A program made the translations under genes and the position numbers. DNA of 63,300 nt, counting the filler, from Hyphochytrium catenoides (taxonomy: Eukaryota > Protista > Hyphochytriomycota), in NCBI GenBank assembly GCA_900088475.1. It is 7 parts of 7 records of this genome, joined end to end, with 100 filler letters (N's around TTAATTAATTAA, not from the genome) between each part and the next. Parts side by side here need not be neighbours in the genome. Positions count along the whole stretch, not along the records: positions 1 to 7,077 come from FLMG01004151.1; 6 more parts are not named here. The stretch is one strand, 5' to 3'. How positions within the stretch are numbered: the stretch's first letter is position 1; each line of letters starts with the position of its first letter. Of the stretch, positions 1-7,077 are shown one piece after another. The notes beneath the pieces are model-generated. The model saw only the letters and a list, made by a program, of their open reading frames with translations, did not search any database and was not told the DNA's origin.

Positions 1-1125
1 TTCATCGAGGACACGACGCTAGGCAGCACCAACATACTGGTCGCGATTGGGCTTCTGGTGATGATGTACCCGCCACTGGCAAAGGTTCGATGGAATCTGG
101 TGCATCAAGTCTTCCAAGATTGGAGAATGCTTCTTCTAACAACCTTTCAGAACTGGGTCCTTGGTCCCTTCTTGATGTTTTTGCTCGCCGCGGCTTTCTT
201 TCACAACGACCCTGGATATATGGTAGGGCTCAGCTTAGTTGGCTGTGCAAGATGTATTGCCATGGTGATAGTTTGGAACTCGTTGGCAGGCGGAGACGAC
301 GAATATTGTGCAGCTATTGTTGCGGTCAACTCAGTGATAACCATCGCTCTGTACTCACCGTACGCTGAGCTCTTTATTAATGTCCTCCCAGAAGCCATGG
401 ATCTTCCTAATACGGACTTGTCAGTGTCTATCGGAGAGGTAGCAAAAAATGTGGCCATCTATATGGGAATCCCCTTTGTCCTGGCTGTGGTCACGTGGTG
501 GCTGCTAGGCTCGTGGAAGGGCAAAGAGTGGTACTATGGAAAGTTCACTAGCCGCATCGGCGTCCTGACGTTGATTGCTCTTTTGTTTACGGTCATTGTG
601 CTCTTTGCCTCTCAGAGTGAGCGCATCACCTCCAACATTGGCAAGGTTCTCTATGCTGCTGTTCCACTGCTGATTTACTTTTTGGTGATGTTCACAATCT
701 CCTTTGGGCTGAGCTACTGGATGGGTGCCAATTATGCGCAGAGCGTGACGCTTGCATTCACTGCAGCTAGCAACAATTTCGAGTTGGCCCTAGCAGTCGC
801 GGTAGCGACATTTGGTCTAAAGTCAGATCCAGCGCTGATGAGCGTGGTTGGGGCACTGATTGAGATTCCTACGATGCTCTTTCTAGTCTACGTATCCTTG
901 CGGCTAAAGGGAAAGCTTTTCTCTTCAGAGGAACCTGATCCCGAAGCTAAGGACTTTGACGATGTAGCGGCAGCGAGCCCGTCAGTCAAAGGCTCGAGAC
1001 TTGAAGGCGGCAAGGGGGCGATTGAAGATCCACTAAGTGATGGCACCAAGGATGAGATGGGCGTGGACTGTGATAATTCTTCGAACAAGAACTGCTGCCC
1101 TTATAAGACCGACGCCTACGTCTGA
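1..1125 (+). CDS. ACR3: ACR3-family arsenite/antimonite efflux transporter (5' truncated by window edge; visible part intronless)
   Basis: Frame is open from base 1 (FIEDTTLGSTNILVAIGLLVMMYPPLAKV). ACR3 motifs: MMYPPLAKV, QNWVLGPFLMF, ARCIAMVIVWN (conserved Cys), FTAASNNFELALAVAVATFG, VGALIEIP. Multiple TM helices. Confidence 0.95.
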   Translation, partial: FIEDTTLGSTNILVAIGLLVMMYPPLAKVRWNLVHQVFQDWRMLLLTTFQNWVLGPFLMFLLAAAFFHNDPGYMVGLSLVGCARCIAMVIVWNSLAGGDDEYCAAIVAVNSVITIALYSPYAELFINVLPEAMDLPNTDLSVSIGEVAKNVAIYMGIPFVLAVVTWWLLGSWKGKEWYYGKFTSRIGVLTLIALLFTVIVLFASQSERITSNIGKVLYAAVPLLIYFLVMFTISFGLSYWMGANYAQSVTLAFTAASNNFELALAVAVATFGLKSDPALMSVVGALIEIPTMLFLVYVSLRLKGKLFSSEEPDPEAKDFDDVAAASPSVKGSRLEGGKGAIEDPLSDGTKDEMGVDCDNSSNKNCCPYKTDAYV

Positions 1126-1474: not shown

Positions 1475-4400
1475 TTAAGCTCTCTTGGCCCCGTGAGTCT
1501 GTGGGTTCTGAAGGTATGAGCCGGAAAAAAGCTCCGCATGATAGCGCTGCTCCCGCTCCATCCGTTTTAGGTAGAGCTCAGCGTCTCCCCTCCAATCTGG
1601 ACCTCCTCCTTCCCGTCGAAGCCCCTCCTCTATGATTCTGATTAGAACTGCTCTGACTTCTGCACCCATAGACACTGCACCACACACGTAAAGGCAGGCA
1701 TTCTCTTTCTCGATTAGCTGCCAGATCTCTTCTTTCCTTTGGAACACCAACTGTTGTACATACTAGAAAGAGTGTAAGAGAGAAGCAAGGGTTAGCAACT
1801 TTAATGAAGTCTCGGAAATCGCGGAGAGCGCAGATTATGGCGACGTTGTGAAGGACTTGTCGGAAACAGAAAGGAAGCGGCGGAAAAAGTAAGGAAAGAA
1901 GAGCAGTGCACCTTCATACTGAAGGAGGAAAGTGGAATGGAGATCGTCGGTGGTCGTTCTATCAGGCTAGGAAGAGACACTGCTTCTTCGGCTACCATGC
2001 CGACGCAGAAGAGAAGAGGCGTATAAATTGGAGTTTGAGATTACTCAGAAGTATGAGAGAGGGAACGAGAGAGAGAGAGAGATGAGGGGGAAGAGAGAAA
2101 GATGTTTGTTCAAAGGGACAGGGGATAGCGTTTTCAGATTACTTTGTCCTTTCTCATTTCCACCGTTTTACCTGGTGGCCGCTAGCTCTCGAGAATGCCA
2201 CACAGAGCTCTGACAGCACTCCGTCTCCCCTTGCCGCCTCTAGCTCCTCGCGGTAGAGGTAATCGCGATCTGGGTGCCGGCAGCCAAAGAATAGAATGGA
2301 TGTCCTACCAGCAGTCAGAGGGCGAGATCAGAAGTAGCCACATAGCAAACAAGAAATGAGAGCTGGACAAAGTGCGTTAGGGACAACCTGACACTCAAAG
2401 CGAGAGAGGGAGAAGAAGAGCCGAGGTCCAGGAGAAAAAGAAGCGATATAGTGATACGAACAAATGGGGGGCGGGGGGTTCATGAGTCATCACATCTGAA
2501 GCAAGAGAGAACATGGAAGTAAGAGCAAGTGCTGGCCAACGGCAATGGCCGTGACCCTATTACCTCTTCCTCAGTCGCCTTGACTGGTTTGCCTCCATCT
2601 GCGCTCTGAGTTCCATAAGGAACGCTCTGAAGGGGGCAATACCAGTGCCCGCGCCGATCATAATGATGGGCGCGTGAACGTCAGAGGGAAGCTTGAAATT
2701 TGACGGCTGGATGTCGATGACTACACGGTCCTTTTGAGGCTGAAGCTCTGAGATCAAGATCAGGAGTGAGCCAAGTGAGGGAGGAGGAAAGGATAGAGCT
2801 ACACTGACAAATAGTGCAGCTTGGCAAATTGACACCGTACGAAGTATGAGACACATTTCGAAAGTCCAGAGACATGGTTTAGAACATAGAACGTCAGGTG
2901 ACGTGCAGTGTGATTTACCTCTAAGATATGAAGAGGCAAAGCCAAACTTCCGCCAGCCCTGCATGAGCTGCTGACTCTTCCTCTCGACTATCTTCGCAGT
3001 GATGGACAGCGAAGTCGGAAGAAGGCACGGAGAAGAAGAAATGGTATAGAAACGTGGAGCATTCCTAGGTAAAAGGTCTGGAAAATACTCAAGAGGGGGG
3101 CAGGAGTCTTTGTATTTCTCCATGACGTCCAGAACCGTAAGGTTCTTCGCTAGAATCTCTGTCTGCATCAAACTATAGTAGGAGAATATTAGGAAGGCTA
3201 AAAGAGGCAGCAAAAAATGTTAAAGCATGGAGTAGAAGAGACAGCTGAGAGGCTGCTTGCTCGTTAGCACTCACGCTGTGCATTTAAAGCAGACAAGATA
3301 ACCAAGAGACCACTTCTATCAGGGACAAGAGAAGAAAAGAGAAGCTGAGCGAAGCGTCAGAAAATAGAGTACTGGCCCAAGGCAATGGACAGGGTCAAGT
3401 GCAATCAACGAGGATAGGTAAGCCGTGCGGCACATAGAAGCTCGGCTTTGATTTGTGAGAAGAGAGAAGCGGGAAAAGCCTTGTAAGACTTAATGAGAGA
3501 GCCACATAAGCTGAACAGGAGTCTGCAAACCTTTCTGGCCCTTGGCCCCCTTGCACCACTGCCCACAGCTTCTTTCGTGTGTCACTGTTTCTCGTGGCAG
3601 AGGCCAGCAGACGTAAGGTCTTCAGCGTAGGAGGGGAAGACACATCAAAATGCCAGCGGATCAGAGAAGAAAGTTCAATTGCTCCCGTCGGAAAGCGCTT
3701 CAACTGTGGAGATTGAGATAGGAGGCAATATAGGATAGAAACAGGGAGAGTCAAATCCGGTGAAGTTAAGACGCGTGGGGGTCGAGACAGAGGTAAAAGA
3801 AGGTCATGATACCCAGACAGAAAATGAAAAGAGAAATGATTTGCTTGCCTTATCATTATCTGATGATGTCCATTGAGAGGTGCGATGAAAGCGCACCGCC
3901 TGATTTTCGGCGAGACCCAAGAGCGCGCAGAGACGCTTTACGTCCTCATCATGGTTAGGAGGGTAAATAAGAAGACTATCTGCAACCTCATAAGTTAATT
4001 TCTCTTCCTCTTCGCTGCGAGCTTCTTTCTGGAGGTTTTGCTCTTGGCCTTGTTGCTCTCGCGGTCGTCTTTCAATCTTGGCACAGCTGTATGCTCTCCC
4101 TGGTTCGTGCCACTCGACATGGCTAATGTCTATCTCTATATGATGGGTGTCTCCCTCTGTCCCAGGGTCATTGTGAGTAATGATGCGATTCGCAAGCACT
4201 ACTGCCTGAGGATGAGGAACGACAAAGAAAAAGAGACAACAACAGAGGGAGGCCAAGAGAGGGAACGAGCAAGAGAGAACAAGGAAAAGAGAACCGAACG
4301 TCCGGTTAGCCAAGGGAAGAAGAACAACAGGGTGGGTGCAAGAACAGACCATACTTCAGGGATAGAGGGTAGGTAGTTCTCGCATATAGACTCTTGAGTG

Positions 4401-5625
4401 TAAGGAGAGGCAAGGTTAACGTTAGGGTTTCTATTGAGGTCTATCTCTTCTTTTTCTCCTAGAGGTACCTTCCCCAATCCCAGAAACTCTTCCGCTGAAT
4501 GGGAAATGCTAGTCCTCCCAGCCAGATACTGCACACGGAACTTGCTTTTGCCAAGCCGCGGGGGGTTAGAACTGACTTGGCCCGTCACCCTGGCCCTCCA
4601 CTCCTCAAGCTGCTCCTGAGATGCAAGGGCAGGTGAAGCAGGAATAGATAACAGAGAAATGAAGGTTAAGTTCGGTAAGAGGCAGATCGTGAGGGTGAAC
4701 TTCCTGCTAATGGCATACATTAGCTTGGTGAAGTTGCTCATGTTACTGAATTCGGCACACTTTCCTACCCGCTGCACATCTATCTATACAGCTATATAGT
4801 CCATCTATCTCTATCTGTCTCTCTCTTCTTCTTCTTGTTTTTCTCTCTCCCCTCCAATCCTCTCTCTTGCTGTCGCTTTCTCCTCTCTGTTTCGACGCCT
4901 TTGTCTCGCTTTTATTCTCTGTTATGGACACTATTCTCTTTTGCCTCTGCGCAGTACCTCGTAGATGTTCCAGACACAGTTGACGCAGTTGTTGCCGCAG
5001 CACTCGCCGGGGCCTGGCTCTCTCGGTCGGGATGCAAGGTCGGCCTCTGAAAGCCGCACGGAGGGTGCAGGAGCTCCTTTAGCATGGCTCTCAGCCTCCA
5101 AAGATGAGTAGGAGAGGAGACGCGAAGCACAAATAGCTGTCGGGGATGGGGACAGCGATGCGGTCAAACGAGAGAGATAGGACAGGAGAATAGTGATTGA
5201 GGCAGCACAGAGAGGAAGAATCCTGAGCATAGGGGTGACATATGGTGGAACGTAGGGATGAAGCTACGGGAGAAGAATTGCCAACTAAAGACATCGACAA
5301 AGAATGACAACGGAAAAAGGAAGAGAAGAAGGACAGCTGAAAGGGGATACGGGAGAGAGCAAGGGCTAAAAAGGGTAGGGTATAATAGATAAAGAGAAGC
5401 GACAAGGGATAACACTGAGTGAGGAAGGACGACATCAAGCGCAAAGGGAAAATAGGGCTCAAAGTGAGAAGTAGCCAAAGACGGTGGCTGCGGCTTGCTG
5501 GAGGGGCATCGCGTGTCCTCACCAAGAAGCAATCGAGGAGTGCGGGCCTGGGACCGAGCTGCAGGTGGGACACTTCCTAGCGAGCTTTGTAGCAAGGCCC
5601 GCAGCTGTCCCGAACAGCCTCTCAT
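1475..5625 (-). CDS. NADPH-dependent FAD reductase (CPR/diflavin-reductase FAD, connecting and NADP domains) with an N-terminal Oxidored-like (OXLD1) Cys domain and no flavodoxin domain; ~648 aa, 9 exons
   Basis: Phase-consistent exons: 5625-5523, 5136-4958, 4615-4355, 4205-3849, 3703-3506, 3162-2919, 2747-2564, 2304-2172, 1762-1475. Motifs: [24 protein letters not shown]|[93 protein letters not shown]. The start codon is uncertain. Confidence 0.85.
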
Positions 5626-6124
5626 CCTGCCCAGGCAGCGATGGTCATGAAAATTCTTTGGAGCCTGGCAGCAGTGGTAGGCAGATGAGAGATAAAGAGA
5701 CCAGTGAGGTTACATGGCGAGCTTCCCTGGGCTTGTCATATTCTTCTTTGAGACAGAGTGGCATACAGACGAAGACAGTAGGAAGGGAATAGGGGCTAGT
5801 ACCCCGCCCGGCCCCTTCTCCTCCTCCCCACTGTTATAAGCTCCAGGGGACACAGCAGCAGGGATAAGACAGATTCTACGAGGGAGAAAGAGAGAGAGCC
5901 AGAATCGAAGGTAATAAGGGGAACCACCGAGATGACGCAGACTAAAGAAGAGAGGAGGGAAAGGATAGAGAGACGTAGGGTCCGGAAGAGACTGATGCCC
6001 ATTGCCAACTCCAACGACGAGAGTCCGATGAGAGAGTGAGTCCTGAGGACAAATGAGAGAAGGGAGAGACCTTGTGGCAGAGGGAATGAAGAGGGGAGAA
6101 CAGGGGGAAAATGGGAGCAAGAGA

Positions 6125-6185
<61 letters not shown>

Positions 6186-6925: not shown

Positions 6926-7068
6926 CTAACCTCGTGGTCTCTTTCTTACTACCGGTTCGTCCTGTCCCAGCTCTACACAGCGCTCGTACGCGGCCCAGAT
7001 GGAGTCAGCCAGGACCGATCGGAAGCCGTTCTTTTCGGCGCGATAGAGGGCGGCCGCGGTGGTTCCTC
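6926..7068 (-). CDS. proC: Last exon of pyrroline-5-carboxylate reductase (rest lost at contig end)
   Basis: After the ctaattag acceptor the exon reads (G)GTTAAALYRAEKNGFRSVLADSIWAAYERCVELGQDEPVVRKRPRG*. This matches the P5CR C-terminal SPGGTT...AAxxRSxELG region. Not in the ORF track. Confidence 0.85.
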
Positions 7069-7077
7069 CTAATTAGT

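Follow-up and report, generated by a model that had tools for sequence, protein, structure and literature searches.

The diflavin reductases (CPR, the P450 BM3 reductase domain, NDOR1/Tah18, MTRR, NOS and CysJ) share an FAD/connecting/NADP(H) module with which the H. catenoides protein can be aligned over its full length, including the C-terminal aromatic lid. Modules of the FNR superfamily are, in most cases, joined in one chain with their one-electron acceptor, be it a flavodoxin, a ferredoxin or cytochrome b5, and, to our knowledge, it is the FAD-to-FMN pair that otherwise marks the members of the CPR family. The Oxidored-like family (Pfam PF09791), in turn, includes human OXLD1, the fungal "oxidoreductase-like proteins" and small bacterial homologues. 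OXLD1-type proteins are present from proteobacteria to humans and are mitochondrially imported, and one fungal member lies beside the NADH site of complex I; we know of no biochemical function for them. The Pfam name "Oxidoreductase-like protein, N-terminal" presumably derives from proteins in which the domain stands ahead of a cytochrome-b5-reductase-type module (FAD_binding_6 + NAD_binding_1). Among 120 listed fungal proteins and 119 metagenome loci, PF09791 is accompanied by no other Pfam domain, and bacterial copies are either proteins of 60-100 aa or fusions with DUF1653, whereas the Hyphochytrium catenoides copy described here is placed ahead of a CPR-type reductase.

The window, i.e., the whole stretch of H. 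catenoides DNA that was analysed, comprises 63,300 nucleotides with filler, and the gene model lies in its first, 7-kb part (FLMG01004151.1). On the minus strand, nine exons running from 5625 to 1475 encode a 643-aa protein followed by a TAA stop. All nine exons stay open and in phase and their splice sites are all intact, with seven of the eight introns being GT-AG and intron 4 being GC-AG. The coordinates were derived independently and agree with the nine in-phase exons of the initial annotation, including the 4958/4615 and 4355/4205 junctions, and the end of the upstream gene is, as had been proposed, that of a P5CR (Pfam P5CR_dimer). The features of the locus are as follows.

5625-5523, minus strand: exon 1, residues 1-34, with the ATG at 5625; Arg/Ser/Leu-rich and acid-free
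5136-4958, minus strand: exon 2, closing the presequence-like stretch and opening the Oxidored-like domain
4615-4355, minus strand: exon 3, last ~15 Oxidored-like residues (EQLEEWRAR...), then the linker
4354-4206, minus strand: predicted intron 3, separating the Cys-domain exons from those of the reductase; phase 0 at either end, GTATGG...polypyrimidine...CAG
4205-3849, minus strand: exon 4, start of the FAD barrel (AVVLANR...HIEIDIS), 38-aa charged insert and FAD_binding_1; ends at the GC donor
3703-3531, minus strand: exon 5, connecting domain; Pfam FAD_binding_1 97-140
3172-2919, minus strand: exon 6, remaining connecting domain and the FAD motifs RFYTISSS (residue 398) and GFASSY (residue 435)
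2747-2564, minus strand: exon 7, where the NADP domain starts and GAGTGIAPF (residue 474) lies; Pfam NAD_binding_1 1-21
2304-2172, minus strand: exon 8, NADP domain continued, including FFGCRH as well as AFSR, whose Ser-Arg belongs to the 2'-phosphate site; NAD_binding_1
1762-1475, minus strand: exon 9, NADP domain up to its end (YVQQ, YVCGA), RYHAELFS, 15-aa tail, and TAA at 1477-1475

The CPR-type FAD, connecting and NADP module is complete. Against a profile of 632 nodes built from 45 CPR-type proteins, the alignment starts at residue 181 (profile position 244), ends at residue 628 (the last position, 632) and scores 368 bits, with a single insert and no interruption over exons 4-9. Given this alignment is contiguous through junctions 4/5 to 8/9 up to the C-terminus, these junctions are considered verified. 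Pfam FAD_binding_1 matches exons 4, 5 and 6 at profile positions 37-83, 97-140 and 150-222 (38.7 bits for exon 6), and NAD_binding_1 matches exons 7 and 8, which together with the full-length profile alignment bears out the complete FAD, connecting and NADP domains of the initial annotation. The FAD_binding_1 barrel and its inserted connecting domain occupy profile positions 244 to ~440, including RxYT and GxxS. Motifs conserved in the protein are RFYT, GFAS, GTGIAP, GCR, FSR, YVCG and the C-terminal aromatic residue, and its NADP(H) domain thus contains GTGIAP, the Ser-Arg pair of the 2'-phosphate site, the catalytic Cys and the aromatic lid. Since the Ser-Arg pair is retained, the sequence points to NADPH, rather than NADH, as the electron donor. 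A 17-residue stretch and the ...AELFS segment match the family consensus up to the last profile position. The best solved-structure matches of this module are plant CPRs and BM3-type fusions, and in the protein library it comes closest to a gammaproteobacterial P450-reductase fusion and to CPRs of protists.

In comparison with the diflavin reductases, the H. catenoides protein has a 38-aa charged insert in the FAD barrel (residues ~212-249), an Ala in place of the Asp of the YVCGD motif, and a C-terminus in which ...RYHAELFS replaces the family's ...RYxxDVWS, so that the lid is Phe instead of Trp and is followed by a tail of 15 aa. This combination of Phe lid and tail resembles NOS. The main difference is that the FMN-binding flavodoxin domain, which defines diflavin reductases, is absent within the 7-kb part. 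Flavodoxin_1 of Pfam matches none of exons 1-3, and the ORFs of introns 1-3 and those of the 1.3 kb upstream have no Pfam match at all. A six-frame scan of the part with the CPR profile returned exons 4-9 only (profile 245-632) and nothing at the flavodoxin part (positions 1-243). Both searches agree with the earlier statement that no FMN-binding loop is found in the gene or in the 1.3 kb upstream, and the set of Pfam families matched by the exon pieces is exactly the expected one, i.e., Oxidored-like, FAD_binding_1 and NAD_binding_1, with no Flavodoxin_1.

The CC-x3-C-x2-C motif, set in a 22-residue stretch, is encoded at 5002-4976 and covers residues 80-88, with Cys at 80, 81, 85 and 88. Exon 2 alone scores 32.9 bits against PF09791 (profile 9-31 of 46), above the gathering cut-off of 24 bits, and exons 2 and 3 joined score 50.9 bits (profile 9-41 of 46), which is about twice the cut-off and upholds the OXLD1-like CCxxxCxxC domain first recognised by eye. 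For the joined-exon Pfam searches and the solved-structure search, two short peptides of 50 and 70 aa were used. Because joining the exons lifts the match from 32.9 to 50.9 bits and the match runs on over the exon 2/3 junction, this junction is also verified. The domain scores 41-51 bits against each of the fungal-type, OXLD1-type and bacterial HMMs, in gap-free or nearly gap-free alignments of 38-47 residues that run straight over the same junction. Its signature, P-x-E-P...CC-x3-C-x2-C-V-W...Y...L-E-E-W, is that of the Oxidored-like family, and the domain agrees at each of the seven columns that are invariant among 47 aligned eukaryotic (metagenome) homologues. The four Cys and the Val-Trp pair sit in such columns, their invariance being partly imposed by the search pattern, and bacterial copies retain the identical Cys, Val and Trp. 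Judged by these comparisons of sequence, the domain is a genuine Pfam Oxidored-like domain. Its AlphaFold model comprises a hairpin, a loop with the Cys and a single long helix. The remainder of exon 3 forms a linker of ~75 aa between the Cys domain and the reductase, close to the initial estimate of ~80 aa, and a Pfam search of this linker gave zero matches.

Residues 1-47 include 6 Arg, 9 Ser and 10 Leu and zero Asp or Glu, a count consistent with the acid-free, Arg/Ser/Leu-rich N-terminus originally quoted. This N-terminus looks like a presequence, and from its composition the protein may be targeted to an organelle, probably to mitochondria. The likeness extends to human OXLD1, itself an imported protein, whose mitochondrial import depends on membrane potential (PMC8664129). 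The ATG of the predicted exon 1 (5625) is the first after an in-frame stop, and the exon ends in the donor G|GTGAGG; the in-frame ATG at 5230 could instead serve as the start, without exon 1.

The architecture had been described as unfamiliar. This holds for the representatives, the 239 loci and the Atlas clusters covered by the searches below, yet these were not exhaustive and absence elsewhere is not established. None of the best 150 of 1.84 billion representatives contains CC-x3-C-x2-C, the query being the exons 6-7 read-through piece, which does not include the Cys domain; the proteins returned are generic CPR, BM3 and CysJ-type proteins, with identities of 40-53% over the matched stretches and 35-40% over longer alignments. 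No CPR-type ORF is present at the 119 eukaryote-type metagenome and 120 bacterial Cys-motif loci, and the neighbouring genes of the bacterial loci are not conserved. A domain-restricted word search with a 508-aa fungal ORF as query gave 120 listed matches (193 more exist), and the listed ones are all Sordariomycete proteins with PF09791 only. When the domain model was used in a structure search, the Atlas clusters retrieved had PF09791 alone or with DUF1653, never with a CPR-type reductase, and the PDB yielded long-helix look-alikes but no match. Following synteny through the ACR3 neighbour, the contig of the best relative was found to have no reductase. A flavodoxin-less cercozoan match of 386 aa is uninformative, as only 107 bp lie between the contig edge and the start of its gene model.

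The best explanation for these observations, with a probability of roughly 0.4, is that one nuclear, intron-rich gene encodes an organelle-targeted 643-aa NADPH-FAD reductase with a flexible linker, in which the Cys4 domain serves as the exit for the electrons or directs them. NADPH would reduce the FAD by hydride transfer. The Cys4 domain, carrying a metal/Fe-S centre or a dithiol, would then swing onto the FAD edge, at the position taken by the FMN domain in diflavin reductases, accept electrons singly from the FAD and hand them to an acceptor. The swing and the uptake of electrons form the weakest step of this scheme, and we put them at somewhat under even odds. By inference only, the four Cys may hold a metal or an Fe-S cluster and take over the electrons of the FAD.

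An equivalent route, from NAD(P)H to a flavin and on to a Cys-ligated one-electron centre in the same chain, is found in phthalate dioxygenase reductase and methane monooxygenase reductase. There, however, the centre is housed in a plant-type [2Fe-2S] ferredoxin fold, while no exon of the H. catenoides gene has a Pfam match to a Fer2-type or ferredoxin family. The b5-reductase-type fusion likewise has its Cys domain N-terminal to an NAD(P)H-flavin module of the FNR superfamily, but that module is short and lacks a connecting domain, whereas the module described here has one. The fusion hints that the Cys domain works with NADPH-flavin reductases. Fused to an FMN-less NADPH-FAD module, it would provide an idea that can be tested in vitro, namely that the Cys4 domain receives or directs flavin electrons, and it would add a new electron exit route to the CPR family. 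A more general proposal, which we regard as unlikely, is that the OXLD1 domain is an unrecognised redox site (Fe-S, metal or dithiol) and a natural acceptor of NAD(P)H-flavin reductases, the pairing being disclosed by a "Rosetta stone" fusion. If true, standalone OXLD1 and the NDUFV3-site fungal complex I subunit would be small electron carriers or redox sensors at flavoenzymes.

It is also conceivable, though on balance doubtful, that the fused gene is real and its Cys domain is a structural (e.g., zinc) or docking module that tethers the reductase to a partner, with the FAD electrons going to a separate carrier, either flavodoxin-like, ferredoxin-like or the NADH-oxidising module of complex I. 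Four Cys within nine residues are most often a structural zinc site, the modelled hairpin, Cys loop and long helix may resemble an interaction element, and the connecting domain, which orients the partner in diflavin reductases, is kept. On the other hand, a pure docking domain fused to an FNR-type module would be rarer than a redox-carrier fusion. The sole solved-structure relative of the Cys domain (7zm7_o, E 6e-7) is Ct-NDUFV3, chain o of 7ZM7, an accessory subunit of Chaetomium thermophilum complex I located at the NDUFV3 site on the peripheral arm's top (PMC9699679). This favours docking, as does the report of only the 13 canonical cofactors, with no extra one, in the 7ZM7 structure. Nevertheless, the Oxidored-like domain was apparently left unmodelled in 7ZM7, where Foldseek and VIA-align, applied with a domain model whose Cys region is close to the 7ZM7-matched stretch, did not find the Cys domain; the missing cofactor therefore says little. 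Association with the N-module of complex I is known solely for the C. thermophilum protein (PMC9699679). Moreover, the acidic, Gly-rich ...DDDGGGS... motif located behind the domain in many fungal copies does not occur in exon 3, although reading this motif as a mark of Ct-NDUFV3-type subunits is an assumption.

Both the electron-transfer and the docking readings require that the Cys domain and the flavodoxin-less reductase form one fused gene, which we consider likely. The exon 3/4 join rests on splice signals, phase and intron-like composition, and neither Pfam nor the CPR profile gives any signal over it. A one-off architecture can be a mis-join, and if the splice is wrong, the locus becomes an ordinary OXLD1-like gene beside a truncated reductase, the fusion being an artefact of joining by eye. 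The standalone OXLD1-like gene would then consist of exons 1-3 reading on to a stop at 4199-4201 (~233 aa), and the reductase would start at an ATG at 4352 with a hydrophobic leader of 49 aa. Both alternative ORFs exist (4199..4777 and 3804..4352), fungal Oxidored-like proteins likewise have a tail of 100-150 aa behind the domain, and a second example of the fusion was not found in the searches made. Even so, two adjacent genes appear quite improbable. The Cys and reductase parts are just 149 bp apart, too short a distance for a terminator and a promoter (the neighbouring intergenic spacers measure 349 and 1301 bp), and this gap has a canonical donor, a polypyrimidine tract, an acceptor and compatible phase. 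With C+T at 0.78 and A at 0.05, the gap is composed like an intron, as C+T is 0.64-0.70 in the homology-verified introns 4-8 and 0.40-0.56 in the exons. Furthermore, the FAD barrel opens with the very first codon of exon 4, directly past the acceptor, so that the only N-terminus the reductase part could call its own is the 49-aa "leader", which is just what the CT-rich tract translates to.

Finally, that the locus is a chimera of the assembly, or a copy that is decaying or has lost its function, and that its architecture thus has no biological meaning, is very improbable: identity between the reductase module and any library protein is only 35-40%, no close orthologue is seen, the exact ORFs are missing from a collection of 15 billion proteins (six ORFs were looked up) and several motif residues are changed (Ser to Thr, Asp to Glu, Trp to Phe, Asp to Ala), but the changes are conservative and fall at positions that vary within the CPR family, the reading frame and the splice sites are intact throughout the nine exons, and the profile alignment extends over the full length with one insert only.

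The reductase gene on the piece (the first record of the window, about 7 kb) has, as modelled, a complete CPR-type FAD/NADP(H) module that lacks FMN; ahead of it, read in the same direction, lie a presequence-like N-terminus and an Oxidored-like domain (PF09791, the OXLD1 type). Three genes were found on the piece:

Genes on the piece
6929-7069 (stop 6928-6926), minus strand: C-terminal (3') end of a P5C (pyrroline-5-carboxylate) reductase; Pfam P5CR_dimer, 26 bits
5625..1475, minus strand: reductase gene with Oxidored-like domain; splice signals and homology
58-1125, plus strand: 3' part of an ACR3/SBF-type arsenite transporter; PF01758, 142 bits

The reductase module retains the functional motifs of its family, namely RFYT (the contact with the FAD pyrophosphate and ribityl), GFAS, GAGTGIAPF, FFGCR, AFSR (whose Ser-Arg pair binds the 2'-phosphate of NADPH in rat CPR), YVCG (with the catalytic Cys) and a C-terminal aromatic lid, and its connecting domain is complete. 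The exchanges at catalytic positions (Ser to Thr, Asp to Glu, Trp to Phe) are conservative, and the Asp of CGD is replaced by Ala. At the C-terminus (1475-1540), Phe takes the place of Trp as the FAD-stacking lid and a 15-residue tail comes after it, a combination that resembles the NOS reductase domain, in which the tail regulates electron transfer. The best solved-structure matches are plant CPRs and BM3. The nearest proteins (a gammaproteobacterial P450-reductase fusion, protist CPRs and Trichuris MTRR) share only 35-40% identity over long alignments, so that by sequence the module is a divergent branch of the CPR family, specific to its lineage, with no named member as a close orthologue.

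The absence of a flavodoxin, claimed in the initial annotation, was borne out within the piece. No Pfam match was obtained in the open reading frames of introns 1-3 or of the 1.3 kb upstream. All stop-to-stop fragments of at least 12 residues on both strands were then compared, with filters off, to a 632-position profile built from 45 full-length CPR-type proteins of the representatives search; significant matches fell in exons 4-9 only (positions 245-632), and the best match in the piece to positions 1-243 was no better than E ~7. This piece therefore encodes no FMN domain, and a partner may be encoded elsewhere.

The Cys domain is a true PF09791 member. It retains every column (two adjacent Cys, Cys, Asn, Cys, Val, Trp) that is invariant among 47 metagenome domains, an invariance partly fixed by the search pattern, and the same Cys, Val and Trp recur in bacterial copies collected with a less strict pattern. 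Against solved structures, the 50-residue domain has one match (E 6e-7, residues 236-267 of 380), to chain o of 7ZM7, 7ZMB and 7ZMG, the "Oxidoreductase-like domain-containing protein" of Chaetomium thermophilum complex I. The fungal PF09791 "oxidoreductase-like proteins" include the subunit named Ct-NDUFV3, which sits atop the peripheral arm at the mammalian NDUFV3 site; the paper describing it makes no mention of the Oxidored-like domain and reports the canonical 13 cofactors only (PMC9699679). An AlphaFold model of a fungal-type domain (pLDDT 82) has a short hairpin, a Cys loop and one long helix, and neither Foldseek nor VIA-align matched it to the PDB, so the domain itself is probably absent from the 7ZM7 model, which then reveals little about a cofactor. 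Mitochondrial import of human OXLD1 depends on the membrane potential and involves processing (PMC8664129). No biochemical function for it was found in the literature, and the OXLD1 literature examined gives no sign of a link to Ct-NDUFV3.

Reduction of FAD by NADPH is a well-supported inference, and the onward route of the electrons is more tentative. The initial annotation had the Oxidored-like domain replace flavodoxin, with the Cys4 site as electron acceptor. Its exons, domains and lack of a flavodoxin in the piece stand, and its interpretation is supported in part. In a softened form, to which we assign a probability of about 0.4, the Cys4 domain, carried by a long linker, would stand in for the FMN domain at the FAD edge and act as a one-electron or dithiol acceptor. 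This reading is suggested because modules of the FNR superfamily are usually fused to their acceptors, the connecting domain is kept, and the four Cys do not vary across copies from bacteria to animals. The main rival, which we regard as somewhat less likely, takes the Cys domain as a structural or docking element, with FAD reducing a separate carrier, and is suggested by the position of the domain protein in fungal complex I.

The gene model was rebuilt independently from splice signals, reproducing the exon coordinates of the initial annotation: nine exons, in phase throughout, with 643 codons and a TAA stop. Seven introns are GT-AG, and intron 4 is GC-AG (donor GATAAG|GCAAGC, 3843-3848), supported by homology across the junction. 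Residues 181-628 align to CPR-profile positions 244-632, the profile end (368 bits), with a single insert of 38 charged residues inside exon 4 and without gaps at junctions 4/5, 5/6, 6/7, 7/8 and 8/9, which this continuous alignment verifies at the sequence level. The 2/3 junction (4958/4615) is also sound: the Pfam Oxidored-like score rises from 32.9 bits for exon 2 alone (profile 9-31 of 46) to 50.9 bits for the joined peptide (9-41), and our HMMs of fungal-type, OXLD1-type and bacterial copies (47, 41 and 51 bits) align 38-47 residues uninterrupted across it. Exon 1/2 is a predicted junction, and an in-frame ATG at 5230 is a possible alternative start.

The junction that matters most is 3/4 (4355/4205), because the link between Cys and reductase exons depends on it. 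No Pfam or CPR-profile signal spans it, and an ATG at 4352, the sole alternative reductase start, would allow two mis-joined genes. That ATG would add a 49-residue Leu/Phe/Ser/Cys leader, which is what the CT tract translates to. In intron 3, a canonical donor is followed by a polypyrimidine tract and a CAG acceptor, with phase 0 on both sides; the 149 bases of the intron have C+T 0.78 and A 0.05, against C+T of 0.64-0.70 in the homology-verified introns 4-8 and 0.40-0.56 in exons. Exon 4 opens directly with the FAD barrel, and the 149 bp between the two parts are far fewer than the flanking intergenic spacers (349 and 1301 bp). This support is indirect and reasonable; the fused gene is probably real and a mis-join unlikely. 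A dead locus is highly improbable.

The same architecture was sought in collections without this genome or close relatives, and was not found among the representatives, loci, listed fungal proteins or Atlas clusters searched. The Cys motif occurs in none of the best 150 representatives matching the reductase piece, and a CPR-type ORF in none of at least 119 metagenome loci with CCMSGCxNCVW or at least 120 bacterial loci with CCxxGCxxCVW. Among at least 120 fungal proteins with the domain, the 120 listed carry PF09791 alone, and Atlas clusters near the domain carry it alone or with DUF1653, including a bacterial DUF1653 + Oxidored-like fusion. The architecture appears to be a novel pairing of two known modules, predicted at one splice (exon 3/4), and would be of value chiefly as a way into the orphan OXLD1 family.

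Among short matches to the reductase module, the best is an annotated 386-residue protein of a Cercozoa sp. MAG (GCA_040357565.1, contig JBDODJ010000589.1, 107-2289) with FAD_binding_1 and NAD_binding_1 only; because its gene model begins 107 bp in from the contig edge, the protein is uninformative on the N-terminus as a candidate flavodoxin-less relative. Many fungal copies of the Oxidored-like domain are followed by a recurrent ...DDDGGGS... motif. Bacterial copies, whose gene neighbours are not conserved, include proteins of ~60-100 residues ending ...PPPEPTTCCGRGCNGCVWEGY..., widespread in Burkholderiales, and a second type in marine gammaproteobacteria.

At the locus, the P5C reductase end shares the strand of the reductase gene and lies 1.3 kb upstream of it, and the upstream spacer holds a long (CT)n/(GA)n microsatellite (~6120-6185). 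The transporter, whose best relatives are oomycete proteins (64-77% identity), is convergent with the reductase gene, their stops 349 bp apart. Its oomycete affinity hints at either a stramenopile-like lineage or a gene acquired by transfer. Non-coding DNA of the reductase-gene strand is mostly pyrimidine-rich (C+T 0.63-0.78), with the exception of the purine-rich intron 2 (4616-4957, C+T 0.39).
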